Sequence record: ON529857.1
Length of the DNA stretch: 64,000 nt
Reading direction: 5' to 3' (one strand)
Positions 23,088 through 55,769 of the stretch are shown piece after piece; the first letter of the stretch is position 1, and each line of letters opens with the position of its first letter. The notes under the pieces were generated by a model that was not told where the DNA came from, did not search any database, and saw only the letters and a list, made by a program, of their open reading frames with translations. The position numbers and the translations under genes were made by a program.

Positions 23088-23438
23088 GGGCGAGGGAAGC
23101 TCCAAGAACGCCGAAATTATGCCCTGTTTGCCAGAATTCACAACAATTCGTCAGAAATAACGGCGATTTTCGGATTCCTGAAAATGGATTCACAAAATTT
23201 TCGGCAATTCGGACCTGGTTTTTGGATTCACTTCCAGGAAAACACGAGGTCGCTATAAAAATCGCCCCCTACCCCCCTCCCTTCGCCAGGCCAGGGGCAA
23301 TTGCTAAATTTGATCCTTAGACGCTTGGCGCCCCCGCGAGAATCGGGCCGAAGAGGGGGTCCGTGGGTCCCTCCGGTCCCATTTTGAAACAGGGGGGTGG
23401 CCCCCTCCGCCGAGGGAGGGGACCGAGGGGCGAGGCGG

Positions 23439-23696
23439 TCAGGCCGCCGCCGCGATTTCGGAGGCTCCCGCCGCCATCTCCGCTTGAACCGCCTTTTCGA
23501 TCGCGGCGAAGTCGGAGGGGGAGGTGTTGGCCTTCAGGTCAGCCATCGAGCGGATTTGCGCGCCCTTCATGTTGGCCTTACGGAAAGCCGCGTTCAGGAC
23601 GTAGTGGAAGCGAGTGGCGATTGCCCCGGCTTGTTGAGCCGTCAGCAGCGACTGGAGGACTTCATAGTGAGAGGCGACCATTTGCATTTTCGTCAT
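23439..23696 (-). CDS. Hypothetical protein
   Basis: 85-aa ORF, last gene of the array. Confidence 0.65.
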   Translation of the reverse strand: MTKMQMVASHYEVLQSLLTAQQAGAIATRFHYVLNAAFRKANMKGAQIRSMADLKANTSPSDFAAIEKAVQAEMAAGASEIAAAA

Positions 23697-23916
23697 TCCC
23701 TTCGGAGGGCGGGGCCGATCCCCGCCGCCGATGAGTCAGTTATACGCAATGCGTTTCTTAACATCAAGCCCTTTCTGCGTATTTCGCAGAAAAAAGTTCG
23801 CGCGCCGGGCCTGTTTCCAAGGCCCGCCGTTACGGCCCTTTTCCGGGCCGTGGAGCGGTTCGGGGCGTGGCGGGCGTCCTAGCCTGCCGCGCCCCTAGAA
23901 GAGCGTCAGCGCGCGC

Positions 23917-24180
23917 CTAGCGGGCCAGGGCGCGGGGTTCTGGCTCACAGCGCGCGCCGTCCAGTTCGGCGGAGGCGGTCACGCAGTCGAGCGCGGTCAG
24001 GTTCCAATCCGCCACGTCGAGGCGGTCAGGCTCTTGCGGCGTCGGGGCGGGCAGGATCAGGGAGAACGTCGGCTCTTGCGCCTTGGCGGGCATGAGGGCG
24101 GCGAAGCCGCGTTGATCGTCATACGACGCCAAGGCGACGGCGAGGGCGATCATCAGGGCGAAGGGAATAGCGTTTCGCAT
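23917..24180 (-). CDS. Hypothetical exported/membrane protein
   Basis: MRNAIPFALMIALAVALAS hydrophobic N-terminus. Confidence 0.55.
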   Translation of the reverse strand: MRNAIPFALMIALAVALASYDDQRGFAALMPAKAQEPTFSLILPAPTPQEPDRLDVADWNLTALDCVTASAELDGARCEPEPRALAR

Positions 24181-24229
24181 GGGCGGGGCTTTCATGTGAG
24201 GGCGGGCGGGAAGCCCGCCCTAGAAGGGT

Positions 24230-24397
24230 TCAGGCCAGAACGTCACGGATGCGGGCCAGCGCGTCCGAGGGGCGCGCGGTTTCGCCGGTCCATTCGGCGC
24301 GGACGTGCGCCGGAACGGAAGCGGAGGCTTGCGGCTGCACCGGGGCGCGCGGGGTCATGCGGGCCGAGGGGGTCAGGGGCGAGCGGTGCTTGAACAT
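24230..24397 (-). CDS. Cassette hypothetical protein, 55 aa
   Basis: GGAGA RBS and own promoter (24447). Confidence 0.6.
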   Translation of the reverse strand: MFKHRSPLTPSARMTPRAPVQPQASASVPAHVRAEWTGETARPSDALARIRDVLA

Positions 24398-24558
24398 GGG
24401 TCGTTCTCCGTGGTTGCCTCTCTCTTGTAAGGGCGAGCGCACACGCTGTCAACGCCTTTTTATCAGAAAAGAGGGTTAACAGTTTCGGCGGGTTTGTTAA
24501 GGTTAACGCCAGCCGGGAAAGAGAAACCCGCCCCGGCGAACCGGGGCGGGCTGGATCG

Positions 24559-25473
24559 TCAGGCGGCCAGCGCCAGCGCCTCGGCGGCCTCGCCTTGCGG
24601 CTCTTGCGCGGCGTCAGCCTCGGCGGCTTTCAGGATGTAATCCGCCGCCGTCTGGGCCTTCGTGCAAGCCTGAATAAACGCCTTCGGGTTGGAGCGGATG
24701 CGGGCCGCCCAATGGCCGATATAGGCGGCGTGGTCGTCGCGCTCGACACTGGCGAAGCCTTGCGAGGCGCAGACAAACGCCGCCGTCAGTTCCGCGACCA
24801 GTTCCTCAAAGGCGTAAGCCTCATCGCCGAATTCACGGCCAAAGGTGCGGTTAAGGCGATGCTCCGCGCCGGTCCAATGCCCCAGCTCATGAAAGGCCGT
24901 CGAATAATAGCCGTCCGCGTTGATGAAGTCGGCGAAGGCGGGCAGGTGGATGCGGTCGAAAGTCGGGGTATAGAACGCCTTAGACCCGCCGTGGCGGACT
25001 TCCGCGCCCGTGGCGACGATCAGGGCGTCAGCGGCGGCGATGCGCTCCGCTTCGGGCAGGATCGAAGCCGGGGCGGCTTCGGGCAGTTCCACGCCCTCGC
25101 ATTGCGCGATGTTGAACACGGTGTAGACCTTGGCGAAGAATCGCGAGGTCGTCTCGCCCGTCGCGGCGTCTTCCTTCGTGGTGCGCGACCAGAAAAAGAC
25201 CGGCGTTCCCTTCTCGCCCTTGCGAACCGAACCGCCGCGCGCCTTGGCCTGTTTGAACGTCATCCAGACGGGTTCCGCGTAACCCTTGGCCTCTTGCTCC
25301 ATCCACAGCCAAAAGGTGTTGGCGCCGCGATAGGCGCGGCCTTCGATGTTGCGGGGCAGGGCCAGGGCCGAACCGCGCGCGGTCCAAGGCTTCGACCAAG
25401 GGCGAACGCCCGATTCCAGTTTACCGGCAATCGTGGCGGCGATCTTGTCAAACACTTCGTTAGCTTGTGCCAT
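24559..25473 (-). CDS. ardC: ArdC-family antirestriction ssDNA-binding protein (DUF1738 + zincin-like domain)
   Basis: PWSKPW, YRGANTFWL, WMTFKQAK..GGSVRKGEKG, VFNIAQCEG, YYSTAFHELGHWTG...RLNR, YAFEELVAEL, HAAYIGHW. Confidence 0.92.
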   Translation of the reverse strand: MAQANEVFDKIAATIAGKLESGVRPWSKPWTARGSALALPRNIEGRAYRGANTFWLWMEQEAKGYAEPVWMTFKQAKARGGSVRKGEKGTPVFFWSRTTKEDAATGETTSRFFAKVYTVFNIAQCEGVELPEAAPASILPEAERIAAADALIVATGAEVRHGGSKAFYTPTFDRIHLPAFADFINADGYYSTAFHELGHWTGAEHRLNRTFGREFGDEAYAFEELVAELTAAFVCASQGFASVERDDHAAYIGHWAARIRSNPKAFIQACTKAQTAADYILKAAEADAAQEPQGEAAEALALAA

Positions 25474-25559
25474 GGGGCGTCTCCGTTGCTGTCAACGTCG
25501 TTTTATTGGTTGGACGGTTAGCCGTCAATCCCCATTCCGAATAATTCTGAATGATCGCG

Positions 25560-25651
25560 TTAACCTCTCTTTAACACTTTCATGCTAGTCTGGCATGGGG
25601 AGGGATGCGCTAGGCCGTTAACCATACCCGTTAAGGTTAACGCCGTGTTAA
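25560..25651. promoter_or_regulatory. Two canonical CtrA-type boxes (TTAA-N7-TTAA) upstream of ardC
   Basis: TTAAcctctctTTAA at 25560-25574 and TTAAcgccgtgTTAA at 25637-25651. Confidence 0.65.
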
Positions 25652-25729
25652 GGTTAACGCTATCGAGCGCGCAAAAGAAAGGCCGCCCAGCGGGCGGCCC
25701 AGTTTAGGAGGAAGCGGGAAGAAAGAGCG

Positions 25730-25924
25730 TCAGTCCCAGCCCAGCGCGCGGCGGGCCTCGGCGCGGGCGGCGCGACCATGCAGCGGGCGCGAGGCGACGG
25801 CCTCGCCGTCAAGGTCCATGTCGTCGAATTGGCGGGCGCGTTCGCGGCGGTCAGTCTGGCGGGCGAAGGCGGCGCGGCGGGCCTCGAAAGCGTCAACGTC
25901 ATTACGGCGGAAAGTGCGGGCCAT
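25730..25924 (-). CDS. Cassette hypothetical protein
   Basis: Own promoter (25993). Confidence 0.6.
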   Translation of the reverse strand: MARTFRRNDVDAFEARRAAFARQTDRRERARQFDDMDLDGEAVASRPLHGRAARAEARRALGWD

Positions 25925-26105
25925 GTCAGGACTCCAAGGTTTCGCCTCCGGCCTATCCGGGGCTTCATCACGTTAGGGCGGGGCGTTCTGGGTGTCAACC
26001 ACTTTTCTACAGAAAGATGGTTAACATTTCCGGGGCGGCTGTTAACCTTAACAGTTAAGGTTAATGCGGAGGGGTGAAAGAAAAGGGGCTTTTCAGCCCC
26101 TCCCC

Positions 26106-26336
26106 TTAGTGGCGCTTGGCTTGGGTCGCCAGCCGCAGGGCGGTTGCGCGATCAATGCGCTTGCCTTGGAAGGTGTGCGAATGGCGGGTGATGCGGCCAT
26201 TCGCGCCACGGTGAACGCGGGTCATCAGTTCGCCCCCGTTGACTTGCATCGTCGTCACCGTCAGGCGGGCGGCGCGGGCGGCGACCGTGGCGGTCGTCAG
26301 GGCAAGGCGGGCGTTCAGGTTGCGGGCGGTTTGCAT
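26106..26336 (-). CDS. Cassette hypothetical basic protein
   Basis: GGAGACACCCGATG RBS, promoter 26387. Confidence 0.7.
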   Translation of the reverse strand: MQTARNLNARLALTTATVAARAARLTVTTMQVNGGELMTRVHRGANGRITRHSHTFQGKRIDRATALRLATQAKRH

Positions 26337-26584
26337 CGGGTGTCTCCCTGTTCCGATGACCCCAATCTAGGGGAGGGCATGGGGAGTGTCAACCGCTTTT
26401 CTGTAGAAAAGAGGGTTAACAGAATAGGCCCGTTTCGCCGGTCACGGCGAGGGCGGCGCGGTCATGGGGCGAGGCGTGACCGGCGCAGGGCGCGCCGCCG
26501 GGTCGGTCCCTGCCCCTCTCTAGGCTTGGGGAGGTCGCGGGCGACGGGGCGGCGCTTGAAAGGCCCTCGCGGGGGTAAAGTGAA

Positions 26585-26690
26585 GCGGCGTCAAGTCAAG
26601 TTCCGCGTAGGCGAAAGTGAAGCGACGTCAAGTCAAGCGCGGGGGCGAAAACCCGGCCCGGTCAAACCGGGCCGGGTCAAGGTCAGGCCG
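26585..26690. repeat. CGTCAAGTCAA short-repeat cluster 1
   Basis: CGTCAAGTCAAG at 26589 and 26626 plus degenerate GGTCAA copies. Confidence 0.7.
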
Positions 26691-27162
26691 CCAAGACGCG
26701 GCGATTGACGCGATTCGCATAGGCCCAGGCGCGGCTGTCTTCCTCGGCGCGCTCATAGGCCGCCTTGGCGTCGGCGGCGCGTTGGGCGTCGAACGCCTCG
26801 CGCGGAAACGCCTTCTCGATGCGCTCGCGTTGCGTCTCGTGCCAAGGGCGCGGATCATAGACCGGCGGCGGGGCGGGCGGGGTCTTGCCGTCCAGCGTGA
26901 CACGGGCGCCGTTCAGGCCGTGCGACCACATACCGCCGGGGTTGAGGTGCGCCAGCAGGTCGAGCGGGTCCATGCCTTCGGGCGCGGTCAGGGCGAGGCC
27001 GCCGCGCTTGTTCAGGGCGTGGGCCGGAAACTGGCCCGTCTCCGGGTCGCGCAGGATCAGGGCGTATTCAGCGGCGAAGCCGGCTTCATCCACGCGGCCC
27101 TTTTCGAGCAAATAGGCGTTGATGGCGGGATTGTTCTTGGCGGCCTTGGCGAGGGTCAACAT
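26683..27162 (-). CDS. Cassette hypothetical protein
   Basis: Start MLTLAKAA after consensus RBS. Confidence 0.7.
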   Translation of the reverse strand: MLTLAKAAKNNPAINAYLLEKGRVDEAGFAAEYALILRDPETGQFPAHALNKRGGLALTAPEGMDPLDLLAHLNPGGMWSHGLNGARVTLDGKTPPAPPPVYDPRPWHETQRERIEKAFPREAFDAQRAADAKAAYERAEEDSRAWAYANRVNRRVLAA

Positions 27163-27306
27163 GGGGTGTCTCCGTTGCGTTGCCCCCGGTGTAGGGGATG
27201 GGCGCACAGGTGTCAACCCCTATTTTCTGGAAAATAGCCCTAGAAGATGACGCTAGGGCGTTAACCTTAACAAATCCCGACCATAGCGCCGGGGCGGCGC
27301 CTGGCC

Positions 27307-27627
27307 CTAGTGGGCGGGGAAGATCACCCGCCCTTGAGGCGTCACATCGTAATCCCACGCGGCGAACAGGGCGGCTTCGGCCAGCGCGTCCTCGCGCGAC
27401 ATCGATGCGGCGGCCTCGGCGGCTTCCACCGCGTCAATGTCCGCCAGTTCCTCGGCGTAGGCGTCGGGATCGCCGTAGCCGCAGGGACGGTTGGGGCGGT
27501 TGGCGAGCCACGCCTCGGCCTCGGCGAGGGTGATGCGGCCCATGGACGGGCGCGAGCCGTAGTCGTTCTTGTAGAGGTCCGAGTAGAGGCTAAGGACCGA
27601 TTCTTCGTGGGTCGGAGCGGGGAACAT
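27307..27627 (-). CDS. Cassette hypothetical protein
   Basis: Start MFPAPTHEE; SDLYKNDYGSRP. Confidence 0.7.
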   Translation of the reverse strand: MFPAPTHEESVLSLYSDLYKNDYGSRPSMGRITLAEAEAWLANRPNRPCGYGDPDAYAEELADIDAVEAAEAAASMSREDALAEAALFAAWDYDVTPQGRVIFPAH

Positions 27628-27946
27628 GGCGTCTCTCCGGCGGGACCATCCCGCCACATGAGCAATCTAGCAAAGAGAAGTTAACAAGAGGTAAACGCCG
27701 GGAGGTTTTCTGGCGAAAAATCGGCGCGGGTCCCCGACTTGAATCGGGCAGGGTCCCCGGATCGATTCCGGCGGGTTCGTCGCAAGTCAGGGCGCCGCCG
27801 ATGCGCCGGGTCGATTCCCACTCATGGCGCATGAGCAGGCCCGTTCCGATCAGTTGCGGGTGTTTGTGGATCGGCTCGCCACACGCCGTTACGGCGGTTT
27901 TACCGCCCGGCGCAACCGCGCCGAGCAGGTGAATCTTCAACGCCAT
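27590..27946 (-). CDS. Hypothetical protein (C-terminal part doubtful)
   Basis: Coupled to the arfA-like gene; C-terminus runs through GGGTCCCC repeats and intergenic DNA. Confidence 0.4.
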   Translation of the reverse strand: MALKIHLLGAVAPGGKTAVTACGEPIHKHPQLIGTGLLMRHEWESTRRIGGALTCDEPAGIDPGTLPDSSRGPAPIFRQKTSRRLPLVNFSLLDCSCGGMVPPERRHVPRSDPRRIGP

Positions 27947-27947
27947 G

Positions 27948-28058
27948 TCAGCGCCCCTTGCGGGTGTAGGAACCCTTACCCTTACGGGGACGAACCACGC
28001 GGGGGCGATAGGCCGGGGTGGCGAGGGCGGCGGCGGCCGGGTTTTTCTTGGGCTTCAT
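27948..28058 (-). CDS. arfA: ArfA-like alternative ribosome-rescue factor, 36 aa
   Basis: Below ORF-track cutoff: MKPKKNPAAAALATPAYRPRVVRPRKGKGSYTRKGR, with the ArfA KGKGSY.RK signature; consensus RBS and own promoter (28109). Confidence 0.72.
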   Translation of the reverse strand: MKPKKNPAAAALATPAYRPRVVRPRKGKGSYTRKGR

Positions 28059-28125
28059 GGGGTGTCTCCGTTGAAAGCGAAGTCACCTTTAAAGGAAGAG
28101 AGGTTGACTGTCAACCCCTCTTCAG

Positions 28126-28479
28126 TCAGGGCAGGCGCGCCGGGTTCAGCTTCAGCGAGCGGAGGCGAATCGACAGGGCGCCTTTGGCCGGGCTTCGCGT
28201 CGACTTCTCCAGCTTGCCCGTCTTGGCCTTGCAGCAGGGGCAGGCCTTGGCTTGGGTCGGCAGGACGTGGCCCGCCAAGGGGTCCAGCGTTCCGCGCACA
28301 GACAGGGTCAGGGCGAGCCCTTGCAGGGAGGTCAACGCGCCCGAGCGGCGGCGGCGCAGGTCGTCATGAACCGTCAGGCCCGCCGCAAGCCGGTTGGGCC
28401 GCGTTACGGCCACAGTCGAGGTGGAAACGCGGTATCCGCCCGGCAAGAGGCCGCGTGTGTCGGGGATATAGCGGCGCAT
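28126..28479 (-). CDS. Hypothetical protein
   Basis: 117 aa, CPCC; second gene of a cassette. Confidence 0.5.
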   Translation of the reverse strand: MRRYIPDTRGLLPGGYRVSTSTVAVTRPNRLAAGLTVHDDLRRRRSGALTSLQGLALTLSVRGTLDPLAGHVLPTQAKACPCCKAKTGKLEKSTRSPAKGALSIRLRSLKLNPARLP

Positions 28480-28481
28480 GG

Positions 28482-28991
28482 TCAGACCGTCAGCGCGTCG
28501 CGCGCCGCCGTCAGTTGGTCGATCAGCATATCCAGACGCCGCACGGCCTCCGCGCCCGAATCACAACCTTCCTTGGCGTCCAGTTCCACCATGACGGCGG
28601 TAAAGATGGTGTCGCCGTAGTGTGGCGCGTCGGCCAGGGTGCGAATCCATGACAGTTCACCTTCACAGTAGGCGGAGGCGAATTCGCACTGCCACGGCGA
28701 CAGGGGCGAGGCGGGCAGAATCGCGCCCAGAATTTGCGGCCCGAGGTCGTCAGCGACGCGCAGGATTTGGAAGCGGCCCGCCATGCCGTCGTCATAGGCG
28801 AGTTGCAGTTCCTTGGCGAGTTGATAGGCGAACTGTTCGCCGGTCGCCGAACCTTCAGCGACCCCCAGAACGGCCTCGTCGTCGCCTATATCGCGTTGCA
28901 TCAGCACGATCGCGTGATACTCGCTAGGGCTGGCGCGGAAGGACGCCAGAGCGTCCAGCGGGGCGATGAAGGGTGTGAGTTTTTCAGTCAT
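28482..28991 (-). CDS. Cassette hypothetical protein
   Basis: Start MTEKLTPF after consensus RBS. Confidence 0.75.
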   Translation of the reverse strand: MTEKLTPFIAPLDALASFRASPSEYHAIVLMQRDIGDDEAVLGVAEGSATGEQFAYQLAKELQLAYDDGMAGRFQILRVADDLGPQILGAILPASPLSPWQCEFASAYCEGELSWIRTLADAPHYGDTIFTAVMVELDAKEGCDSGAEAVRRLDMLIDQLTAARDALTV

Positions 28992-29141
28992 CGGGTGTCT
29001 CCGTTGTCGGTCCCTCCCTTCTAGCGGGGCGGGCGGAGGTGTCAACCTCTTTTTCTCACTTAATCTAGCGTTAAGGTTAATGCGAGCGGGCCGCAAAAAG
29101 GGGCGTCGCCAGTCCGGCGCCGCCCAGTCTTGCACCTTGTG

Positions 29142-29408
29142 TTAGCGGCCTTGAGCCGCCCGGCGGCGCCAGTCCGCGACCGCCTCCGGCAGGTTGGAGA
29201 AATAGCCGCCCTTGTGGTAGCCGCCCAAGTCGTCATTGCGCCAATGCGTGACGAAGGGGTGGCCCGTGTTGTCGGGAAGGTGGCGCAGGACGACGGCGCC
29301 CTTGCACAGGCCGCGACCGCCCGGAGTCTTGGACTCCAGCAGGGTCACGCGCTTGGAGGGATCGGCGGCGGCAAGGGCCTCTTGGGCCTGGGTCAGATAG
29401 TCAGCCAT
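29142..29408 (-). CDS. Cassette hypothetical protein
   Basis: HPFVTHW...GGYHKGGYF; consensus RBS. Confidence 0.75.
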   Translation of the reverse strand: MADYLTQAQEALAAADPSKRVTLLESKTPGGRGLCKGAVVLRHLPDNTGHPFVTHWRNDDLGGYHKGGYFSNLPEAVADWRRRAAQGR

Positions 29409-29563
29409 GGGGCGTCTCCGTTGTTGACGCCCTAGAACTAAAACAGGGCGGCGGGACTGTCAACATCTCTTTTACAGAAAAGAGGGTTAATGCGCGAGGG
29501 TGTTTCGTTAACCTTAACGCCGGGCGGACGCGATGCGCCCCGGCGCTAGGCCGGGGCGTCGCC

Positions 29564-29854
29564 CTAGAGCGGGTGCAGGCAATGCCACAGGGCGTTAGGG
29601 ACTTCCTCCCCAGCGGACACGGCGGGGAAGTCCGTCGAACCGCCTTCCGGGCCGTAATGAGGCAGGGAGCAGGGCGGAAGGTCGCCCATGAGGCGGATAC
29701 GATAGAGCGGCACGTCAGCGAACGGGGGGTTTTCCACCAGTCCCAGAACCTCGGCGGTGACGCTCCCGTTCATGTAATAGGGCTCATAGGTTACGATCTG
29801 GCCCGGCTTGAAAGTGGTGTTCTCCGGGGTGCGGACGGGGGCGAGCGCCGTCAT
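29564..29854 (-). CDS. Hypothetical SH3-like protein
   Basis: FKPGQIVTY...YRIRL. Confidence 0.6.
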   Translation of the reverse strand: MTALAPVRTPENTTFKPGQIVTYEPYYMNGSVTAEVLGLVENPPFADVPLYRIRLMGDLPPCSLPHYGPEGGSTDFPAVSAGEEVPNALWHCLHPL

Positions 29855-29857
29855 GGC

Positions 29858-30037
29858 TTAGAACCCCTCGGCGATGGCGGCGGCCTGCCGCAGATGCTGT
29901 TCCCCCAGCTTGCGCAGGGCGACGCGCAGCAGACGCCACGCCTCTTTGCGGTTTCCGGCCAGGGCGGCGGCTTCGGCCCGGCGCGCGAAGTGCATCTTGG
30001 ACTTGCGAGCGAGGCGGACGGCTTTGCGGTTGGTCAT
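29858..30037 (-). CDS. Cassette basic protein (paralog of 54582-54794)
   Basis: HFARRAEAAALAGNRKEAWRLL. Confidence 0.7.
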   Translation of the reverse strand: MTNRKAVRLARKSKMHFARRAEAAALAGNRKEAWRLLRVALRKLGEQHLRQAAAIAEGF

Positions 30038-30189
30038 CGGGCGTCTCCGTTTCGATGCCCAAGGTGTAGGGGATGGGCGCGGTGGTGTCAACATCTCTTT
30101 TATAGAAAAATGGTTAACACCCGGTGGGGGTTTGTTAAGGTTAACGCAGGGCGGGCAGGCCGCCGCCCGGCGAACCGGGCGGCGGGGGA

Positions 30190-30612
30190 TCAGTCGGCGG
30201 GGCGTCCCGTTCGGATGCAGTCGCGGGCCTGTTGCAGCGTGTAGCGGGTCAGCCACAGGCGGCCCGCTTCGTCGTCGCTGGCCTCCGGCGTCAGGCCGGG
30301 AAGGCGCGACAGGCGGGCGGCGTTGGCGCACAGCATCTCAGACGGTAGAAGCGCGGCGCACAGAGCCTTGAGCGTTCCCACGTCCAAACCGTTATAGCCG
30401 TCGCCCGCCTTACGGATGACGGCGGCGGCGCGGGCGATCTGCCCCAAAATCGGCAGGACGGCGGACGCCTCTTCCATGGCGGCTTGCGTTAGTTCGATCA
30501 GGTCCGCCGCGTCGTCGTCGCCGTGGGACGCGGCGTCATACCAGATATCAGCGCCCGCCCCCTTGTCGAGGGCGGCGCCGAGGTCCAGCGGGATCGAGCG
30601 GCGCTCGCCCAT
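30190..30612 (-). CDS. Hypothetical protein
   Basis: Coupled second gene of a cassette. Confidence 0.65.
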   Translation of the reverse strand: MGERRSIPLDLGAALDKGAGADIWYDAASHGDDDAADLIELTQAAMEEASAVLPILGQIARAAAVIRKAGDGYNGLDVGTLKALCAALLPSEMLCANAARLSRLPGLTPEASDDEAGRLWLTRYTLQQARDCIRTGRPAD

Positions 30613-30896: not shown

Positions 30897-31048
30897 CGGG
30901 TGTCTCCGTGTTGATGCCCAAGGTGTAGGGGATGGGCGCGGAGGTGTCAACACCTCTTTTTCACGGAAAAGGGTTAACGTCGCGAGGGTTTTGTTAAGGT
31001 TAACGCGAACGGTTCGCAGCGCGCCGCCCGGCGAACCGGGCGGCGGGG

Positions 31049-46045: not shown

Positions 46046-46047
46046 GG

Positions 46048-47733: not shown

Positions 47734-47775
47734 GGGGTGTCTCCCGTTGTTTGATGGCTCAGGTGTAGCCCGGCG

Positions 47776-48114: not shown

Positions 48115-48268
48115 GGGGTGTCTCCTCTGTTCGCCCTCCTTCTAGGCCGGGCGCGGCCGGGTGTCAACCCCTTTTCCGTAGTTATGGGTTTGTTAAGGTT
48201 AACGCGAACCGCTCGCGAAAAATGCGCCCGGCCGGGGGAGACAAGCCCGGCCGGGCGCGGTCGGCGCC

Positions 48269-48622
48269 TCAGGCGTTGAGGTCGCCGTATTCGGTCCCGC
48301 ATTGCAGGATTTCGCCCGTCTCGTCGCTGAAATGGATTTGATTCAGCCGCAGGAAGGCGCCGGTGCGGGCGTGGGGCCATTCGACCTGACAGGTGAGCAT
48401 ATCGTCGAAGATCACCTTAGGCTCGCCGTATTGCGACCAGTCGATGCCGCCGCGCGCGTCAATCTCGCCCTTGGCGTCGGAGACGATGCGATCCAGCACC
48501 GACCGGGCGATCCGGCCCGGCGCGCTCTTGATCCCATAGGCGCCGCGCCCGTTGTTGGCGAAGCTGTTCCAGTTGCTTTCGTCTTGAGTGTAGTTCTCGA
48601 CGTCGATCTGTTCGTCCGTCAT
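48269..48622 (-). CDS. Hypothetical protein
   Basis: GGAG RBS, second gene. Confidence 0.65.
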   Translation of the reverse strand: MTDEQIDVENYTQDESNWNSFANNGRGAYGIKSAPGRIARSVLDRIVSDAKGEIDARGGIDWSQYGEPKVIFDDMLTCQVEWPHARTGAFLRLNQIHFSDETGEILQCGTEYGDLNA

Positions 48623-48626
48623 CGCC

Positions 48627-49010
48627 TCACTCCTTGTTGATGATCAGATAGCCCGGCACGTCGTCGCGGGCTTGCGGGCGCACCACGAAGAGATAGAACC
48701 GGCCGTTGTGGGTGCGATTCTTGGCCTCGGCGGCGTCGCGGGTCGGATAGACCGACAGGCCCAGGGCGGGCAACCAGTCGCCGACCCACGGCTCGTCGTT
48801 GAGCGTCAGCAGATACTGCTGCGGCAGGTCGTCCTCGTCGCGCTCGTCTTCGCTCTCGTCCAGATGCTCGACCTCCCACCAGCCGGCGCCGTGGGCGTCG
48901 CCCGAGGTGTAGCCCTCGCGAACCTGCCCGGCGATCATGTCCAGCACGTCCGCCAGATGATCGGCGGTCAGGGAGGCGCGGGGGCGGAAGGTGAAAACCG
49001 TGTTCTTCAT
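48627..49010 (-). CDS. Cassette hypothetical protein
   Basis: VLDMIAGQVREGYTSG. Confidence 0.7.
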   Translation of the reverse strand: MKNTVFTFRPRASLTADHLADVLDMIAGQVREGYTSGDAHGAGWWEVEHLDESEDERDEDDLPQQYLLTLNDEPWVGDWLPALGLSVYPTRDAAEAKNRTHNGRFYLFVVRPQARDDVPGYLIINKE

Positions 49011-49169
49011 GTCGGGTGTCTCCGTTGTTCTGTCTCCCTTCTAGCCGGGGCGATTTCAAGTGTCAACCGCTTTTGTGTAGATAATGCCGGAGAGACGTTA
49101 ACCTTAACACCGCATTAAGGTTAATGCGAACGGGGCGCAGAAAGGCGGTCCGTCAGGACCGCCCTCGCG

Positions 49170-49742
49170 TCAGGCCAGATAGACCTTGCCGTCGTCGCCG
49201 ATATAGACCCCGACCGTCCCGAAAGCCTCGGCGGCGGATTGCAGGGCCGTGCCGTGCGGCGAGGGCCAGCCGCCGTCGAAGAAACCGGCGCCATGCCCGT
49301 TGCGGCTGCGCCAGAAGTCATGCCCCGCCTTGGGGCTGTCGATGTCGGGAAAGGCCAGCGTCGCCGTCTCGGGCATGGCCTCGGCGTAGGCGTCGAAGTC
49401 GCGCGTTCCCCGGAACAGGTCGCAGTCGGCGATGATGCGCGCCAGCGTCTCCGGCGCCAGGTCGGTGAAGCGGGCGGCGCGGAAGGACGGCGCGTCGGCG
49501 GGCTTGTCGTCGCACCACCATTCGGACTCGTTCAGGTCCGTGAGCATCCAGTCCCAGGCGCCGTCGCTGCGCGTCTGCGGGGCGAGACTCCAGCCTTGAA
49601 ACAGGGCGATGATGTAGCCTTGGGTGAAGGCGTCAAGGTCGCGATCCCACAGATAGACGTTTGACGCCTTCGGCGCCCAGGAAACGGGCGGATCAAGCGG
49701 GATGCAAACCTCTCCGGTGGTGTCGAGTATGAGTTCCGGCAT
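49170..49742 (-). CDS. Hypothetical protein, GHDFW..RNGHGAGF family (paralog of 35647-36267)
   Basis: AGHDFWRSRNGHGAGFFDGGWPSP. Confidence 0.8.
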   Translation of the reverse strand: MPELILDTTGEVCIPLDPPVSWAPKASNVYLWDRDLDAFTQGYIIALFQGWSLAPQTRSDGAWDWMLTDLNESEWWCDDKPADAPSFRAARFTDLAPETLARIIADCDLFRGTRDFDAYAEAMPETATLAFPDIDSPKAGHDFWRSRNGHGAGFFDGGWPSPHGTALQSAAEAFGTVGVYIGDDGKVYLA

Positions 49743-49752
49743 GGGGCGTCTC

Positions 49753-49956
49753 CTACAGGGCCAGGGCGGCGTCGAAGGCCGCCGATTGCAGTTTCTTGGC
49801 GGCTTCGGCTTCGCGGGGGTGCCGCTGCGCCAGACCGTCAAAGCGTTCTTTCTGGTGCGACCGCTCGCCGTCAGCGGTGGTCATGTTCATCACCTCGCCC
49901 CACAGGTGGGCCATTTCGAGGATTAGGACGGAACGGCGGGAAGCGTTCATATACAT
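49753..49956 (-). CDS. Cassette hypothetical protein
   Basis: Consensus promoter and RBS. Confidence 0.65.
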   Translation of the reverse strand: MYMNASRRSVLILEMAHLWGEVMNMTTADGERSHQKERFDGLAQRHPREAEAAKKLQSAAFDAALAL

Positions 49957-50027
49957 CGGGTGTCTCCGGTTGCGGTGGTTCTGTAGTAGCCCGCCGCAAC
50001 CGGAGTGTCAACCGTTCTTTTTCAGAA

Positions 50028-50504
50028 TCAGCACCGCCGCAACATTTCGCGCGTCAAGGCTTCTTCCTGGCGGGCGATGTCAATCGCGGCGCGCTCATTC
50101 GCCTTGGCGTGGGCGCTGGCGGCCTGTTCCTGACAGATGGCCTGACGCCGGCGAATCTCATTGGTCGAAAGGGTGCGGAACAGGACGTCGGCGTCCTGAT
50201 CGACCTTGACGGTCCAGTGCTGCGCGGATTCATCGTCCGACCGCAGGTGCGGTGGGAAATAGATGTCCGCCACGTCCTGTTGAAAGAAGGTGCCGTCGCC
50301 GCGCATCTTGCGTTCCAGGTCCGCCACCTCGGCGGGCGCGATCTCGTCGATTGAGAAGGTCACGCTTTCGCCCAGGCCGTCGCCCTCGTCGATGAAATGG
50401 CCGATCTGCCCCAGCGACATACGCTCGACGGCGTGAACGTCTTCGGGCGTATGGGCCGTGTGCAGAACCGTCACGGTGATGACGGTGCGGATGATCTGAG
50501 GCAT
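50028..50504 (-). CDS. Cassette hypothetical protein
   Basis: Consensus promoter and RBS. Confidence 0.7.
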   Translation of the reverse strand: MPQIIRTVITVTVLHTAHTPEDVHAVERMSLGQIGHFIDEGDGLGESVTFSIDEIAPAEVADLERKMRGDGTFFQQDVADIYFPPHLRSDDESAQHWTVKVDQDADVLFRTLSTNEIRRRQAICQEQAASAHAKANERAAIDIARQEEALTREMLRRC

Positions 50505-50656
50505 GGGGGTGTCTCCCGTTGTTGTTCGCCGCCTGTGTAAGGCGGTCGAAAAGGAGTGTCAACCTCTTTTTCACAGAAAGTCGTCAACCTTAATGCGGTG
50601 TTAAGGTTAACGCGAACCGACCGCACAAAAGAAAACCCGGCCGAAGCCGGGTTCCC

Positions 50657-50989
50657 TCAGAAAGGTATGTCGGAGTCCAGCGCGGGCGCCGGCTCGACGG
50701 GGGCGGGCGGGGCGTTCAGGGCGGCGATGTAGGCCGCCTGCTCCGCCTCGCTCATGTCCCAGAAGGAATCATCTTCCGGGTGCGGGCCGCGCGGTCCCCG
50801 ATAATGGGGGTTGCGCTCCCAGGTGTCGAACGGCGACAGCACATATTCGCTGTCCGGGTCGAGGCTTCCATAGGCCGAGACATATTGAAACACCGCCTCG
50901 TTCATGTATTCCGCCTGTCCCATCGCCTCCTGCGCCAGGGCGTCCGCCTTTTCGCGTTCGTAGGCGTCGACTCGTTCCAGGTAGTCCAT
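50657..50989 (-). CDS. Cassette acidic hypothetical protein
   Basis: FDTWERNPHYRGPRGPHPEDD; ends DSDIPF (SSB-like acidic tail). Confidence 0.7.
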   Translation of the reverse strand: MDYLERVDAYEREKADALAQEAMGQAEYMNEAVFQYVSAYGSLDPDSEYVLSPFDTWERNPHYRGPRGPHPEDDSFWDMSEAEQAAYIAALNAPPAPVEPAPALDSDIPF

Positions 50990-51185
50990 GTTCAGTTCTC
51001 CGGTTGAAGCTACTTCATGGCGGTTCTCCTTGGGTTGGGGTTGCTCTCGTCTTGAGGCCCCACCATAGCAGGGCGGTTCAGGGTGTCAACACCTTTTTCG
51101 CAGAAAAATCGACGAGGCGGTTCTGTTAAGGTTAATGCGACCGGTGCGCAGATAGACCCCGGCTTAGGCCGGGGTCGTGTGCGCG

Positions 51186-51542
51186 TCAGCCGCCGAGGCG
51201 CTGGATGATTTCGTCATTCGACATCGTGTCCATCAGTTCCTCGACGCGGCGGGCCTTTTCAGCCTCGACCTTCTGGGCCGCCTCCTGCGCGCGGCGATAT
51301 TCGGCCATCGCCGCCTTGCCCGCCTCGGTCGTCTCGGGATCGACGGTCATGTAAAGCGTGACCTCGCGGCCCTGGCGATCCACGAAGACCGGGCGCCCGG
51401 ACGGCGTCATCGTCACGGTGAAATGGTGCTTGACCAGCCGATTGGCGGTCTCCATCCCGAAGTCGCCGCCGAAGCAGCCGCCGGCCGCCTTGACGGTGTG
51501 GTTTTTACGCAGACGGGTGTGATAGCCGATATTCTTGTGCAT
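51186..51542 (-). CDS. Cassette hypothetical protein
   Basis: Consensus promoter and RBS. Confidence 0.7.
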   Translation of the reverse strand: MHKNIGYHTRLRKNHTVKAAGGCFGGDFGMETANRLVKHHFTVTMTPSGRPVFVDRQGREVTLYMTVDPETTEAGKAAMAEYRRAQEAAQKVEAEKARRVEELMDTMSNDEIIQRLGG

Positions 51543-51705
51543 GGGGTGTCTCCTCCCTTGATCTGTCCCAGGGTATAGCCGGGGCGGTTCTAGGTGTCAA
51601 CCGCTTTTTCATAGAAAATGCCGGGGATGCGTTAAGGTTAACGCGAACCGCTCGCGAAAAATGCGCCCGGCCGGGGGAGACAAGCCCGGCCGGGCGCGGT
51701 TTGGT

Positions 51706-52332
51706 TCAGACGGCGACGTGCTTGCCGGTCTCGTCGAACCAATAGCCGTTGATCTGCAAGGTCTCGTTGACCGCCTCGTCGGAGGTTTCGGCCTCGTAAG
51801 CCTCGCGAAGCTGTTCCCAAATCCAGTCCATGTATCGGCGCAGGACGTCCGCCAGGGCGCGCTCCGTCTCGGGCGTCACGTCGCCGTCTTCGCCGAGGGT
51901 GACATGAATGTCCACGGACCCCGAATGGGTGTAGCGGTCGCGGTGGCTGATCTCCGCGCGCAGGGCGAAGGCGTTGTCCTGTTGCAGGGTGAACAGGTCG
52001 GCGGCGATTTGAAGCAGCTTCGCATCTTGCGGGGCCTCTTCCTTGAGCGCCGCGAGGGCGCCGGCCTTGAAGACGTAGCCGCCGGTGAAACAGGCGCCGT
52101 CGCCTTGGGTGTAGAAGCCGCTCCACAGGATGCGCGGGCTTCCGTTCCGTTCGGTGTCGATGGTGATTCCCATCAGGGCGGCGAAGTCGTCCGCCTCCTC
52201 CAGCACCGTGTCGGCGTAGTTGGTGTCCCCCGCCATCACCACGTCGGTGAACCACTGGCGGGCGGCCGCCTTGGCCTTCTCGGTCGGCAATTCGTCGATC
52301 TGATAGAGGGTGCGGGTCTGGGTCATGGGCAT
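51706..52332 (-). CDS. Conserved hypothetical, SGFxxQGDGA family (often auto-annotated as antitoxin in mobile elements)
   Basis: LYQIDELP...AKAAARQWF, ILWSGFYTQGDGACF, YEAETSDEAV...GYWFDETG. Confidence 0.7.
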   Translation of the reverse strand: MPMTQTRTLYQIDELPTEKAKAAARQWFTDVVMAGDTNYADTVLEEADDFAALMGITIDTERNGSPRILWSGFYTQGDGACFTGGYVFKAGALAALKEEAPQDAKLLQIAADLFTLQQDNAFALRAEISHRDRYTHSGSVDIHVTLGEDGDVTPETERALADVLRRYMDWIWEQLREAYEAETSDEAVNETLQINGYWFDETGKHVAV

Positions 52333-52499
52333 GGCGGGTGTCTCCGTTGTTCTGCTTCCCTTCTAGCCGGGGCGGTCTCAGGTGTCAACCACTTTTTCAC
52401 AGAAAATAGCAGGGCGGCGGCCATTAACCTTAATGGGGTGTTAAGGTTAATGCGAGCGGGTCGCAGAACGCCCCGGCTTCGGCCGGGGCGCATCGCGGG

Positions 52500-53030
52500 T
52501 CATCCCTCCCCGAAGTAGAAGGCGCCCAGCCACGTCCGAATCGCCTCGTCCTCTTCATAGGAGGTCGGGTAATCCGTCCACGGCGTCCCCCAGTCCTGAT
52601 ATTGCAGGCGGGCGTTCGACGGGTCGCCCCACGTCCCCAGCTCGCCGCGCAGGCGCAGCGCCGGGCCGCCGGTGCTCAGCAGGATTTGAAACTCTTCGGC
52701 GCCGTCGCGGTCCTCGGGATCGCGCGGGCCGGGGTCGCGCCAGCCGTCGCGCACCTGAACCGACAGGACCGATTCGATGATCTCCTGACGCACGGCGTCC
52801 TTGTCCACCTCCTCGCCTTCGACCGGCTCGACGCTGTAGTCGTCCAGCCCCGCCGCCTCGGCGGCTTCCTCGGCCGCCTCTTCGGTCTCATAGGTGGCGC
52901 TCTCGTAGCCGTCCGCCTCGATCGTGTAGCCGATCGGCTCGGGCGTGTCGTCGGCGGCGTTCAGCTTGGCGGCCTGCTCCACGATGGTGGAAAGCCAGGC
53001 GGCGGCGTTGCCTTTAGCGTGTTCGCTCAT
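52500..53030 (-). CDS. Cassette acidic hypothetical protein
   Basis: EFQILLSTGGPALRLRGEL, YQDWGTPW. Confidence 0.75.
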   Translation of the reverse strand: MSEHAKGNAAAWLSTIVEQAAKLNAADDTPEPIGYTIEADGYESATYETEEAAEEAAEAAGLDDYSVEPVEGEEVDKDAVRQEIIESVLSVQVRDGWRDPGPRDPEDRDGAEEFQILLSTGGPALRLRGELGTWGDPSNARLQYQDWGTPWTDYPTSYEEDEAIRTWLGAFYFGEG

Positions 53031-53191
53031 GTCGGTGTGTCTCCGTTGTTGGTGACACCCTTTTAGCCGGAGCGATTCAGGGTGTCAACACATCTTTTTC
53101 AGAAAATACAGAAGGAGGTGTTAACCTTAATACGGCGTTAAGGTTAACGCGAACGGATCGCAGAACGCCCCGGCGTCGTCCGGGGCGAGGA

Positions 53192-53404
53192 TCAGCCCTT
53201 GAACCAGGACTCAGGCGCAGACCCGATCCAATGCGGGCGACCATTCGTCAGGGTGCGGCGAATGTGGCGCGAGGGCAGGGCGTCGTCGCGAATGACGACT
53301 TCATGCGCCTGCTGGCGCGCCCATGCCTTCGCCTTGGCGAGGGCGGTGAAAGAGCGGCGCGCCACGATCTCGCGGAGGGTCAGGGCGGTGGCGGTGTAGG
53401 CCAT
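53192..53404 (-). CDS. Hypothetical protein
   Basis: AAAGGA RBS, second gene. Confidence 0.6.
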   Translation of the reverse strand: MAYTATALTLREIVARRSFTALAKAKAWARQQAHEVVIRDDALPSRHIRRTLTNGRPHWIGSAPESWFKG

Positions 53405-53419
53405 GATTCGTCCTTTCGT

Positions 53420-53665
53420 TCAGTTCTGGCGCAGGCCGGGGAAGGCCGGATTCTGGTCGCACCACGCCTGCGCCTCCGCCTCGGTGGTGAAGGGCATACG
53501 GCAAAGGCCGGTGGTGCCGTCGGGGTGTTCGACCGTCCAGCCCGCCGGCTCGCGGGTCCAGTTCGGCTTGTCGGCCTCGCTCGACCAGGGGGCGGCGCCT
53601 CGGACGGAGGCGGTGCGGCCGGTCACGGCGTGGCGCCAGACGTGGTGCGGGATGGGGCGGCTCAT
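53420..53665 (-). CDS. Cassette hypothetical protein
   Basis: Consensus promoter and RBS. Confidence 0.7.
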   Translation of the reverse strand: MSRPIPHHVWRHAVTGRTASVRGAAPWSSEADKPNWTREPAGWTVEHPDGTTGLCRMPFTTEAEAQAWCDQNPAFPGLRQN

Positions 53666-53738
53666 GGGGCGTCTCCGTTGTTGGTGACACCCTTCTAGCC
53701 GGACGCCAGAAGGGTGTCAACCTCTTTTTATCAGAAAA

Positions 53739-54536
53739 TCAGTCCCGCGTGTCGGCGATCATCTGCGCCGTCTCGGCGGCGATCTCCTGGCGGTCGCCGA
53801 CGATCAGCCAGCCGTCTTCGTCGGCGTTCGGATCGAAGACGACGAAGGGGCCTTCATGCTGCGCCGCGCGGGCGATCAGTCCGGCCTTGATCGCCTCATG
53901 CCGGGCGGCGATCTCGTCAGGCGTCAGGGACGGGGCGCCGTGGAAGGCGTGGACGTCGAACCGTCCTTCGAGGAAGGCGGCGCGGCGGCGAAACTGATAG
54001 CCGCCCATCATCACCTCACATTCGGCTTGCGAATAGATTTCGGGGCCGAACAGATGGCCGATCACGTCGCCCTTGTTCTGCTTGGTCAGATAGGCAGGCG
54101 GATCGACAAAGCGCACGATCAGGCCCAAGAATCCACCTTCGGTGAAATAGCCGGTGACGACGGCGCGCCCCAGGTTGTTGAAGTTGGCTTCCACTTCGGA
54201 GCCCACGGCGGGCGGCGGCTCCTCCCCGCCCCAGCGCGGCAGAAGGCTCTGAGTCTCGACCGGGCGGCCGTCCGCATCCCATTCCAGCGCCTCCCATTGC
54301 GGCAGGTCAGGCGTCCAGCCGTAGCCGTAAACCTCCAGCAGCCAGGACGGGCCGTAACGGTTGCGGATCAGCCGCAGCGCGGCGGCGTCGTCCTCGTCGC
54401 TCTCGCGCGCTTCGGCCCAGACCGCGCACAGGGCGGTTTTCCAGCCCCCGGCGGCGCCGGCGTATTTGGTCGCGAACGCCTCCAGGGCGGCGCGGGCGGG
54501 GTCGCGCAGGGGCGGATAGGTCACAGCGTCAGTCAT
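53739..54536 (-). CDS. Cassette hypothetical protein, 265 aa
   Basis: Consensus promoter and RBS; LRLIRNRYGPSWL. Confidence 0.75.
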   Translation of the reverse strand: MTDAVTYPPLRDPARAALEAFATKYAGAAGGWKTALCAVWAEARESDEDDAAALRLIRNRYGPSWLLEVYGYGWTPDLPQWEALEWDADGRPVETQSLLPRWGGEEPPPAVGSEVEANFNNLGRAVVTGYFTEGGFLGLIVRFVDPPAYLTKQNKGDVIGHLFGPEIYSQAECEVMMGGYQFRRRAAFLEGRFDVHAFHGAPSLTPDEIAARHEAIKAGLIARAAQHEGPFVVFDPNADEDGWLIVGDRQEIAAETAQMIADTRD

Positions 54537-54581
54537 GGGGCGTCTCCCGTTTCGGTGTTGAGCCTGTCTATCCGGGCGGCG

Positions 54582-54794
54582 TCAGCTTGTCAACCGATTT
54601 TCTGTGGAAAGCGTTTCGCGCGGCTGGACCGCATAGGTGCGGCGCACGGCGCGCTCCGCCCCCTGCTTCTGCAAGGCCAGCTTGAGGCAGCGATGCGCCT
54701 CGTCCCGATCCCCCGCCAGGGCGGCCTCTTCGGCGCGGCGCGCGAAATACAGCTTGGCGCGGCGGGAATGGCGGGCGGCGATCTTGGCGTTCAT
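54582..54794 (-). CDS. Cassette basic protein (paralog of 29858-30037)
   Basis: YFARRAEEAALAGDRDEAHRCL. Confidence 0.7.
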   Translation of the reverse strand: MNAKIAARHSRRAKLYFARRAEEAALAGDRDEAHRCLKLALQKQGAERAVRRTYAVQPRETLSTENRLTS

Positions 54795-54979
54795 CGGGTG
54801 TCTCCGTTGCGTCTGTCCTTTCGTTCTAGGGCAGGGCGAGGATGGTGTCAACCTCTTTTCTGTAGAAAAATGCAGTCGGCCCGTTAACCTTAATGCGGCG
54901 TTAAGGTTAATGCGAGCGGCTCGCGTTAACCTTAACAAGCTGGGGCGCGGGTAGGCCCGCCAGCGGCGGGCCTTGTCGG

Positions 54980-55054
54980 CTATTTAAACAGCATGACCAC
55001 GACGACGGCGAGCGCCAGTTTCCACGCGCCAAGGGCGCGGTCCAGCACCTTCAC
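54980..55054 (-). CDS. 24-aa hydrophobic micropeptide (paralog of 36854-36928)
   Basis: (GTG)MKVLDRALGAWKLALAVVVVMLFK; GTGA overlap with the upstream stop. Confidence 0.55.
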   Translation of the reverse strand: MKVLDRALGAWKLALAVVVVMLFK

Positions 55055-55350
55055 GCGCCCTCCGGCGCGATGAAATAGACGCGATCAATAAACGTCACCT
55101 CGACGCCCTCGGGCTGTTCGTCCGGGCTGTCGGTCTCCAGATCGGCGTCGATCAGCACGGTCTGGAGGCTGTTCTCCAGCCACGTCACATAGTCGGGGTC
55201 CGTGTCCGCCGTCTCCAGAACGGCGTCAAGGTCGGCGTCGAGACTGGCGCGCAGCATCTGCACGGCGTCTTGCCAATCCATCGGACCTGCGGGCGCCTCT
55301 TCGGGCAGGTAGCCCGGCACATTGGAGCCGACGACATATTGGTGGGACAT
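55051..55350 (-). CDS. First cassette gene, acidic hypothetical protein
   Basis: Start MSHQYVVGSNVPGYLPE; promoter 55404. Confidence 0.7.
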   Translation of the reverse strand: MSHQYVVGSNVPGYLPEEAPAGPMDWQDAVQMLRASLDADLDAVLETADTDPDYVTWLENSLQTVLIDADLETDSPDEQPEGVEVTFIDRVYFIAPEGA

Positions 55351-55769
55351 GGGCGGGGGGCCTTTCGTGTTGCGGTCCTGCCTTGTCCCACGCCCGGCGT
55401 CAGGTGTCAACCGCTTTTCTTCAGAAAACTTCGCCGCGCGGCGGGTGGGCGTTAACCTTAACACTTAACCTTAATCGTTAAGGTTAATGCGAACGGCTCG
55501 CGTTAACCTTAATAACCCTGCGCCGCGTGCGGGTATGGCCGGGTCATACCCGGTATGACCGGGGAGGGCCGGACGGCCTCGAACCAGGGCCGGGCCTGGA
55601 TGACTCGGACGGCGTTAACCTTAACAAACCGTTACCTGCGAATGCGTCGCAGGTGCTGTCTCAACTCCGGCCCCGGCCCCCCTGGCGGGGCGGCCCCCAT
55701 CAGGTGCGAATGCGTCGCAGGAGGGCTCGCATCGTCCGGCCCCCGGCCCCTGGGGGCGAAACCAAACCG

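Follow-up and report, generated by a model that had tools for sequence, protein, structure and literature searches.

Small phage genes that come and go at repeated expression signals have been described in T4-type phages. The genomes of phi1 and RB49 carry about 50 promoter/stem-loop (PeSL) units each (Arbiol et al. 2010, PMC2839356), and gene turnover in T4-type phages follows a junction pattern tied to these units (PMC2839356; Comeau et al. 2014, PMC4122927). A second described region is the terminal repeat of phiCbK-like phages, which is rich in TTAA and CtrA sites and full of small genes of unknown function (PMC9437464). In phiCbK, the direct terminal repeat of 10.3 kb spans the first 20 small genes, and in Colossus a repeat of about 16.7 kb extends from just after the terminase gene over nearly the whole block of small genes to the peptidase/portal genes (Gill et al. 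2012, PMC3556154). In Bacillus phage SPO1, a host-takeover module of 24 genes lies in a 13.2-kb terminal redundancy (PMC10531801). Here, we analyse a 32-kb array of small genes located in a 64,000-nucleotide stretch of DNA, called the window from now on, which corresponds with 100% identity to positions 248616-312615 of ON529857.1. The window is the final 64 kb of the 312,615-bp genome of Brevundimonas phage vB_BpoS-Kikimora, a phiCbK-like jumbo siphophage of the subfamily Dolichocephalovirinae, which is related to Caulobacter phage phiCbK and whose isolation host was B. pondensis LVF1. The record was assembled as a circle, and coordinates are those of the window unless stated otherwise. We propose that the array is an accessory early-gene region of the host-takeover type, organised as a row of self-contained cassettes, in which a repeated unit would serve both as expression signal and as recombination site in a PeSL-like manner. 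We give this reading a probability of roughly 0.7.

The block, at 23.4-55.5 kb, sits between the terminase gene and the peptidase/portal genes, all of them on the minus strand, and the record annotates 60 minus-strand genes within it. The publication describing Kikimora is silent on this region and on the genome ends. Minus-strand profile and word counts were compared between the 32-kb block and the remaining 280 kb of the Kikimora genome. A profile hidden Markov model of the 75-nt promoter core, trained on 33 seed copies, gave 42 minus-strand matches, all of them within 24411-55433. The best match to the remaining 280 kb had E=0.25, so that no credible copy was found there. The 32-kb array of repeated-module cassettes that an earlier note had read from the letters alone is therefore borne out, with 42 units, 60 genes and a module confined to the block. 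Profile matches and anatomy place the array, with its 42 promoter copies of the repeated unit and about 60 small genes, at 24398..55536 on the minus strand. On this strand, the first bases of the TTGACA boxes are 24452, 25998, 26392, 27216, 28114, 29045, 29463, 30091, 30950, 31680, 32150, 32813, 33563 and 33991 for units 1-14; 34488, 35043, 35516, 36324, 38075, 39306, 40254, 41073, 41969, 43074, 43850, 44461, 45270 and 45722 for units 15-28; and 46464, 47790, 48167, 49066, 50011, 50562, 51089, 51600, 52388, 53088, 53720, 54593, 54851 and 55410 for units 29-42. Most cassettes carry one gene (27) or two (13), a single one carries three and another one four, and the distance from promoter to promoter is 258-1751 nt, with a median of 742. 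Outside the block, Kikimora genes abut or overlap in long operons.

Word statistics point in the same direction. The block represents 10.3% of the genome yet contains 50 of the 54 copies of TTAACCTTAA found in a genome-wide word count, with a strict strand bias. KGTTGACAC (33 of 38 genome copies inside the block) and GGAGACRCC (36 of 42) are strand-biased as well. When compared with window shuffles, TTGACA-N17-TAnnnT was observed 8 times against 0.04 expected, and the ribosome-site word 39 times against 6. The array is far beyond chance. Among 50,697 phage records, the full Kikimora unit (query 34434..34610) found a full-length match solely in Kikimora and in its relative Gurke. A pattern scan of IMG/VR returned 43 single matches, none of which fits the unit profile, and an Rfam search of the window gave 0 matches.

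One complete unit, obtained by direct reading, occupies 34434..34610 on the minus strand and consists of a hairpin, two TTAA palindromes, a T/A tract, a -35 box (34488-34483), a -10 box (34465-34460) and a ribosome site, followed by the ATG at 34433. The example that the earlier note had quoted from 34.43-34.53 kb is exact, and each cassette does appear to be equipped with its own -35, spacer, -10 and ribosome site. A GC-rich hairpin lies 0-27 nt past the preceding stop codon in 34 of the 35 intergenic gaps, and its median energy is -27.8 kcal/mol compared with -17.1 in random windows of the block. One 35-nt hairpin is found near-unchanged at six cassette ends (38159-38178 and at 39.4, 40.3, 46.5, 48.2 and 51.7 kb), and a small GCGA..TCGC inverted repeat directly precedes many palindromes; therefore, the repeated unit reaches further upstream than the promoter. 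The palindrome is 12 bp long, with GTTAA/TTAAC half-sites flanking CC or GG, and is present in one to four copies per unit, the closest of which begins 35, about 45 or about 54 nt ahead of the -35. When two palindromes are adjacent, their inner TTAAs create a canonical CtrA box, TTAA-N7-TTAA; Kikimora has ten of these, none of them outside the block. The earlier note had seen the TTAA boxes and was right about their presence, but overlooked that they are 12-bp palindromes, and also missed the CtrA-box core promoter of the relatives described below.

Between palindromes and -35, a T run at -18 to -13 is followed by an A run at -10 to -5. The A+T content of this tract is 0.62, against 0.35 for the block, AAAA is present in 41 of the 42 units, and by position and composition we take the tract to be UP-element-like. 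TTGACA is exact in 42/42 units, the next base being C or G in 39 of them, and TA follows after a 17-nt spacer in 38. With -10 hexamers such as TAGAAG, TACACC and TAGAAC, the -10 region agrees in 35 of the 42 units, at a fixed offset, with at least four of the seven specified positions of the Caulobacter RpoD -10 consensus (consensus from PMC8144410). The distance from -35 to ATG is 53-60 nt in 39 units, and GGAG is located mostly 11 nt ahead of the ATG, in a short leader of about 20 nt that carries the ribosome site. Generic sigma-70 and terminator scans were of little use for these units, whose -10 boxes follow the Caulobacter type and whose hairpins have T tails too short for the terminator rule.

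Evidence that the units take part in gene exchange comes from two pairs of close relatives. The first pair is Kikimora and Gurke. Gurke has 47 units, shows 84-95% DNA identity to Kikimora in the region and contains 58 of the 60 Kikimora genes in fully collinear order, plus about seven extra genes. The two genes missing in Gurke, as indicated by gene comparison, encode proteins of 70 aa (53192..53404, minus strand) and 65 aa (47339..47536, minus strand). The block is 87.6% identical between both phages and the flanks about 95%, whereas gene by gene the identity varies between 66 and 100% with abrupt steps at cassette borders, as in a mosaic. For 3/3 cassettes gained or lost, the change of best match falls within a unit, and six of the eight Gurke-extra segments fall within -33 to +92 of a -35. 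Kabachok and Domovoi form the second pair, with 94-96% identity in the block and four whole-gene gains or losses. In all four, the shorter genome is a chimera of the two flanking repeat copies, with the sequence upstream of one copy joined to that downstream of the second copy. At these junctions the copies share 37 nt of hairpin in one event and 59 nt of promoter in another; in the remaining two, the shared stretch is at the ribosome site/ATG and measures 14 and 13 nt. Taken together, the junction lies inside a unit in 7/7 cassette-sized gains and losses, in agreement with the gene gain and loss at repeats put forward by the earlier note. Kabachok retains 37 of the 60 Kikimora genes, with local swaps at several places, two genes moved elsewhere and one inverted. 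Gene order, although collinear with Gurke, and gene content are therefore not invariant among the relatives; such invariance was one of the outcomes that, according to the earlier note, would have refuted its reading.

Because the repeated stretches are the sites at which genes are gained, lost and swapped, the unit serves as expression signal and as portable homology at once, as PeSL units do in T4-type phages. According to the mechanism that we propose, the hairpin at the start of a cassette would stop or dampen read-through from the preceding one, and the 12-bp palindromes would be sites for a DNA-binding protein, with CtrA as leading candidate. The A/T tract, placed like an UP element, would then assist the exact -35, the 17-nt spacer and the Caulobacter-RpoD-like -10, so that the main RNA polymerase of the host could transcribe each cassette separately and early in infection, and the leader would present a strong ribosome site at a fixed distance from the ATG. 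Recombination at hairpin, promoter and ribosome-site/ATG stretches adds, removes and swaps genes, as the comparison of relatives shows. Finally, the Kikimora/Gurke unit would descend from a CtrA-box promoter, a new version having spread via inter-unit recombination before these phages split, and this replacement would have freed the core promoter from the CtrA box at -35. Early timing and immediate expression by host RNA polymerase, as well as anti-defence roles of the genes, are presumed from the sequence.

Several considerations weigh against this reading. Units are on average 52% identical, the longest exact run that two of them share has a median of 13 nt and only 51 of 861 pairs share at least 20 nt; most unit pairs should therefore be poor substrates for classical homologous recombination. 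Orthologous Kikimora and Gurke units are 85% identical compared with 52% for non-orthologous ones, that is, no homogenisation is visible since the split. Units bordering the Gurke-only cassettes show no unusual likeness to each other. Part of the junction signal is expected anyway, since viable events have to lie in intergenic sequence, most of which consists of units. As the hairpins have short T tails and a generic terminator scan shows no enrichment, we speak of a putative terminator or attenuator that may stop or damp read-through. Promoter strength, timing and termination in Kikimora are likewise predictions.

Comparison with the second pair of relatives revealed that the core promoter occurs in two types. 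Hairpins, palindromes, -10 boxes and ribosome sites are the same in the units of Kabachok and Domovoi, yet TTGACA is missing. Their -35 position is occupied by a canonical CtrA box, TTAA-N7-TTAA, with the -10 following 10 nt later. The TTGACA type was counted 38, 44, 0 and 0 times in Kikimora, Gurke, Kabachok and Domovoi, respectively, and the strict CtrA-box pattern 0, 0, 32 and 29 times; canonical TTAA-N7-TTAA sites amount to 66 in Kabachok. A CtrA-box profile built from Kabachok promoters gave 50 matches in Kabachok, 42 in Domovoi, 5 in a metagenomic relative and 1 each in Kikimora and Gurke. The same profile matched 22 times in Colossus and 7 times in phiCbK, all within their terminal repeats. 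Among the phiCbK matches are the promoters of gp005 and gp018, for which CtrA binding and a loss of activity in a ctrA mutant have been shown (Mascolo et al. 2022, PMC9437464). The only match in the whole Kikimora genome (27666) is the last CtrA-box-type promoter, at 27640..27700 on the minus strand, upstream of the gene 27307-27627. Kikimora and Gurke retain one CtrA-box promoter each, and TTGACA together with the A/T tract is found in 41 of the 42 Kikimora units. In alignments of orthologous upstream regions, hairpin, palindrome, -10 and ribosome site correspond to each other but the -35 does not: TTGACA coincides with that half of the CtrA box which lies upstream, and the spacer is shorter by about 3 nt.

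A CtrA-box promoter is thus in use in the block of Kabachok, Domovoi, Colossus and phiCbK, and its replacement by a consensus -35 with A/T tract in Kikimora and Gurke is a new element. Most simply, the CtrA-box type would be ancestral, and the TTGACA type would have taken over the whole array in the Kikimora/Gurke lineage. We infer that it spread through the array by recombination between units, because 41 parallel changes, each with the same A/T tract, are unlikely. Given the 85% versus 52% identity mentioned above, any such spread predates the split between Kikimora and Gurke. The full proposal, that about 40 promoters were converted as a family from a CtrA-needing form to a regulator-independent consensus with an UP-like tract, which passed from unit to unit by recombination or gene conversion, is tentative, with the odds leaning somewhat against it. 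If true, the array would be a self-homogenising promoter family through which a phage could change the regulation of all its early genes in a single evolutionary step. New genes would be plugged in at these same repeats, down to precise ribosome-site/ATG swaps.

Similar signals were noticed in other genomes. The contig of the uncultured relative (from SRR30224755, 1-13800) displays the end of a terminase-like gene, GGGGACCC iterons and then small genes; its promoters are of the CtrA-box type, with leaders that are longer and contain hairpins. In phiCbK, the first gene past the terminal repeat, gp021 (10537), has an iteron copy and TTGACA-N17-TA upstream, the sole match on the gene strand of that block. 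Erythrobacter phage vB_EliS-L02, an unrelated alphaproteobacterial phage, contains a weak match to the TTAA-palindrome part (OL955261.1, 138182-138248), which may be another case of TTAA-site clusters.

Could the array instead be under the control of the host cell cycle? If the palindromes are CtrA sites, cassettes would be expressed only where CtrA is active, so that transcription would be confined to CtrA-active cells ('lytic deferment') rather than taking place at once everywhere. Host CtrA is the leading candidate for a palindrome binder on account of the TTAA half-sites and of the precedent in relatives. CtrA binds and activates block promoters in phiCbK (PMC9437464), and these promoters fit the Kabachok-type profile. 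The palindromes are also retained in both promoter lineages, and ten Kikimora units have the canonical site between paired palindromes. However, a lone palindrome has the spacing TTAA-N2-TTAA instead of the canonical N7, most units are without a canonical site, and the 12-bp palindromes are missing from Colossus and phiCbK although both have CtrA-box promoters. Moreover, a core promoter with a perfect -35 and A/T tract should need no activator. We consider CtrA-dependent expression of the Kikimora array unlikely, if worth keeping in mind. With regard to other binders, the phiCbK regulator TgrL and its host paralogues were dropped, the motif derived from chromatin immunoprecipitation (ChIP; PMC10688885) being not TTAA-based, and a full-text literature search for the 12-bp palindrome yielded nothing relevant.

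A second alternative is that selection for expression has simply kept a large number of strong early promoters and terminators similar to each other, recombination being incidental and without any role in a 'gene library'. That the most conserved columns are precisely the -35, the A/T tract and the ribosome site, the rest of the unit being about 50% identical, is what selection would produce. Between Kikimora and Gurke, gene order is fully collinear and units are no better conserved than genes, and the shortness of the exact shared runs is equally in line with it. Selection for expression is less apt to account for the way in which likeness is distributed along the array. Neighbouring units are more alike than distant ones (0.61 versus 0.50, a difference reached in 0/2000 permutations), and this extends to the 17-nt spacer, a segment without known sequence requirement, with an identity of 0.59 between neighbours and 0.39 for distant pairs. 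Nor would it be expected to yield identical hairpins at six sites, chimeric junctions inside units in every one of the seven cassette-sized gains and losses, or one promoter type across the whole array in each lineage. In consequence, we regard selection alone as improbable and prefer units that are both expression signals and recombination sites.

The likeness of neighbouring units could also have arisen if one cassette had been duplicated in tandem and the genes had then diverged, and the near-identical units at 33991, 34488 and 35043 would suit such an origin. The genes under these three units are nevertheless unrelated. In the whole block, similarity was detected in just 2 of 1770 protein pairs, corresponding to two paralogue pairs among the 60 proteins: 35647-36267 with 49170-49742 and 29858-30037 with 54582-54794, at 45% and 50% identity. 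Since the cargo is unrelated, this is not a paralogue array, and duplication is a very improbable origin. An integron-like system with site-specific cassette capture deserves hardly any credence in spite of the ordered single-strand row of unrelated small genes with hairpin-containing repeats between them, because each cassette has its own promoter, junctions are located at hairpin, promoter and ribosome site and not at one crossover point, no recombinase family of Pfam or PHROGs was matched among the 60 block proteins, and the sole annotated 'integrase' of the genome is about 140 kb off.

What do the cassettes encode? The cargo is, as the earlier note had described it, mostly small, acidic or of unknown function: the 60 block proteins have a median length of 114 aa, 37 are acidic, and only 4 belong to Pfam families (ArdC, ArfA, DUF7447 and DUF6926). 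PHROGs added eight further families, all without a function, and PADLOC gave 0 matches. The gene 24559..25473 (minus strand), whose 304-aa product is named 'DNA primase TraC' in the record, is of the ArdC anti-restriction type, with an ArdC N-terminal domain (Pfam ArdcN, E=1.6e-37), a zincin-like peptidase (MPTase-PolyVal, E=3e-44) and a match to the anti-restriction PHROG 7245 (E=1e-85). An ArfA-like alternative ribosome-rescue factor of 36 aa is encoded at 27948..28058 on the minus strand (Pfam ArfA, E=1.9e-9, in agreement with the record annotation), and its protein is kept in Kabachok at 85%. The earlier note had called the recognisable cargo anti-host. ArdC and ArfA do fit this description, but the label rests on two genes of 60, and a putative anti-host role extends at most to these two. 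A DUF7447 protein of 141 aa (PF24239, E=4.5e-26) is encoded at 31201..31626 on the minus strand. Also on the minus strand, the gene 51186..51542 encodes a small widespread protein of 118 aa with 67 homologue clusters; one homologue resides on a plasmid-like contig together with ParA, MvaT-type and integrase genes, and another one in a Pseudomonas genome. AlphaFold2 modelled this protein with a predicted local distance difference test score (pLDDT) of 91, without a fold match in the PDB, and its sequence matched neither Pfam nor PDB sequences. The 'winged helix' label of its Domovoi homologue is unsupported, and the protein was dropped as palindrome binder in view of these missing matches and of a family that is also present in CtrA-less hosts. 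As about 55 of the 60 genes are without known family, the block is a defined place in which to seek host-takeover and counter-defence functions.

The position of the block also deserves attention. Its upstream neighbour is the gene of the large terminase subunit (57439..60174, minus strand) and its downstream neighbours are the portal gene and a trypsin-like peptidase gene (20008..23087, minus strand), according to the record annotation. The same genes bound the block in Gurke, Kabachok, phiCbK and Colossus. The block begins right after the large terminase gene, which is the start position of the terminal repeats of phiCbK and Colossus, and by this positional homology it may be first-entering DNA. 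Three clusters of GGGGACCC iterons accompany it, all on the minus strand: a terminase-proximal one with about eight iterons of about 24 bp (56897..57093), a middle one with four iterons (37828..37923), contained in the annotated and conserved 314-aa gene 37073-38017, and a distal pair of about 24-bp iterons (27728..27758). The three clusters are position-conserved in Gurke, Kabachok and Domovoi. The iterons are also found just after the terminase gene in the metagenomic relative and near the left genome end in phiCbK and Colossus, where a further copy lies just past the right end of the terminal repeat. The clusters may mark packaging or terminal-repeat boundaries, with 56897..57093 as candidate boundary region. 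Because the further clusters lie at 37.83-37.92 and 27.73-27.76 kb, the terminal repeat of Kikimora may reasonably be guessed to span about 19 or 29 kb.

Tandem GTCAA/TTGACG-type repeats with units of 16-42 bp are present at 55771..56009, under the annotated plus-strand open reading frame 55600-56208, which may not be a real gene, and a shorter second set is present at 36687-36797; both sets follow an iteron cluster and precede TTAA palindromes. Elsewhere in the Kikimora genome, outside the window, ON529857.1 has genes for a GcrA-like cell-cycle regulator and for a protein with the annotation MotA-type middle-transcription regulator (88032-88553 and 134433-135023), possible players in a switch away from the early cassettes.

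How does the array compare with known systems? As in T4-type phages, a composite unit of stem-loop, AT-rich tract, strong sigma-70-type promoter and ribosome site lies in a variable region, mostly upstream of genes without known relatives, and junctions of gains, losses and replacements between close relatives fall inside the units. The phage lineage and the host are unrelated and there is no sequence homology; since Kikimora belongs to the Dolichocephalovirinae siphophage lineage and not to the T4-type phages, the array is an analogue of the PeSL system and not a member of it. Kikimora copies form one contiguous single-strand row of 32 kb, in contrast to the several hyperplastic regions of T4-type phages. 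The Kikimora hairpin is always upstream of the promoter, and the unit has additional 12-bp TTAA palindromes and a strict ATG spacing. As regards scale, at which the earlier note knew of no description, the array is not without precedent, in light of the number of PeSL units in phi1 and RB49 and of the TTAA- and CtrA-site-rich terminal repeats of phiCbK-like phages. Its term 'integron-like' is a poor analogy: the array shares with integrons a one-directional row of unrelated small genes separated by repeats, but there is no integrase in or next to the block, as the earlier note had correctly stated. A site-specific recombinase, attC-type sites and a promoter common to all cassettes are likewise absent, and exchange would proceed by homology or microhomology at several positions of the unit.

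With the terminal repeat of phiCbK-like phages, the block has in common its genome position, small genes of unknown function, intergenic TTAA-based sites and GGGGACCC iterons at the start, and Kabachok and Domovoi share the CtrA-box promoter type of that repeat. It differs in size and in number of promoters (32 kb and 42 promoters, compared with 10-17 kb and 7-22 profile matches), in the 41 TTGACA promoters with A/T tract that stand beside a single CtrA-box one in Kikimora and Gurke, and in the 12-bp palindromes, which phiCbK and Colossus do not have. The host-takeover module of SPO1 and the pre-early terminal-repeat region of T5 resemble it in their small, mostly unique genes in or by a long terminal repeat, with host-type promoters and a presumed first action. 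The descriptions consulted for these two mention neither a regular repeated unit nor a recombination role for it, and the Kikimora genes are known from sequence.

The array is a PeSL-like system found in a new phage lineage and joined to the CtrA-site-rich region already known from phages of phiCbK type, and what is new are the array-wide promoter switch and the precise junctions. Promoter/terminator-mediated modular shuffling, so far documented in T4-type myoviruses, is extended by it to unrelated giant siphophages of Alphaproteobacteria. The junctions are unusually clean, with crossovers in the 13-14-nt stretch at the ribosome site/ATG that exchange the gene under an unchanged promoter. Sister lineages that infect the same host species and carry orthologous early cassettes behind either CtrA-box or consensus -35 promoters provide a natural comparison for CtrA 'lytic deferment'.

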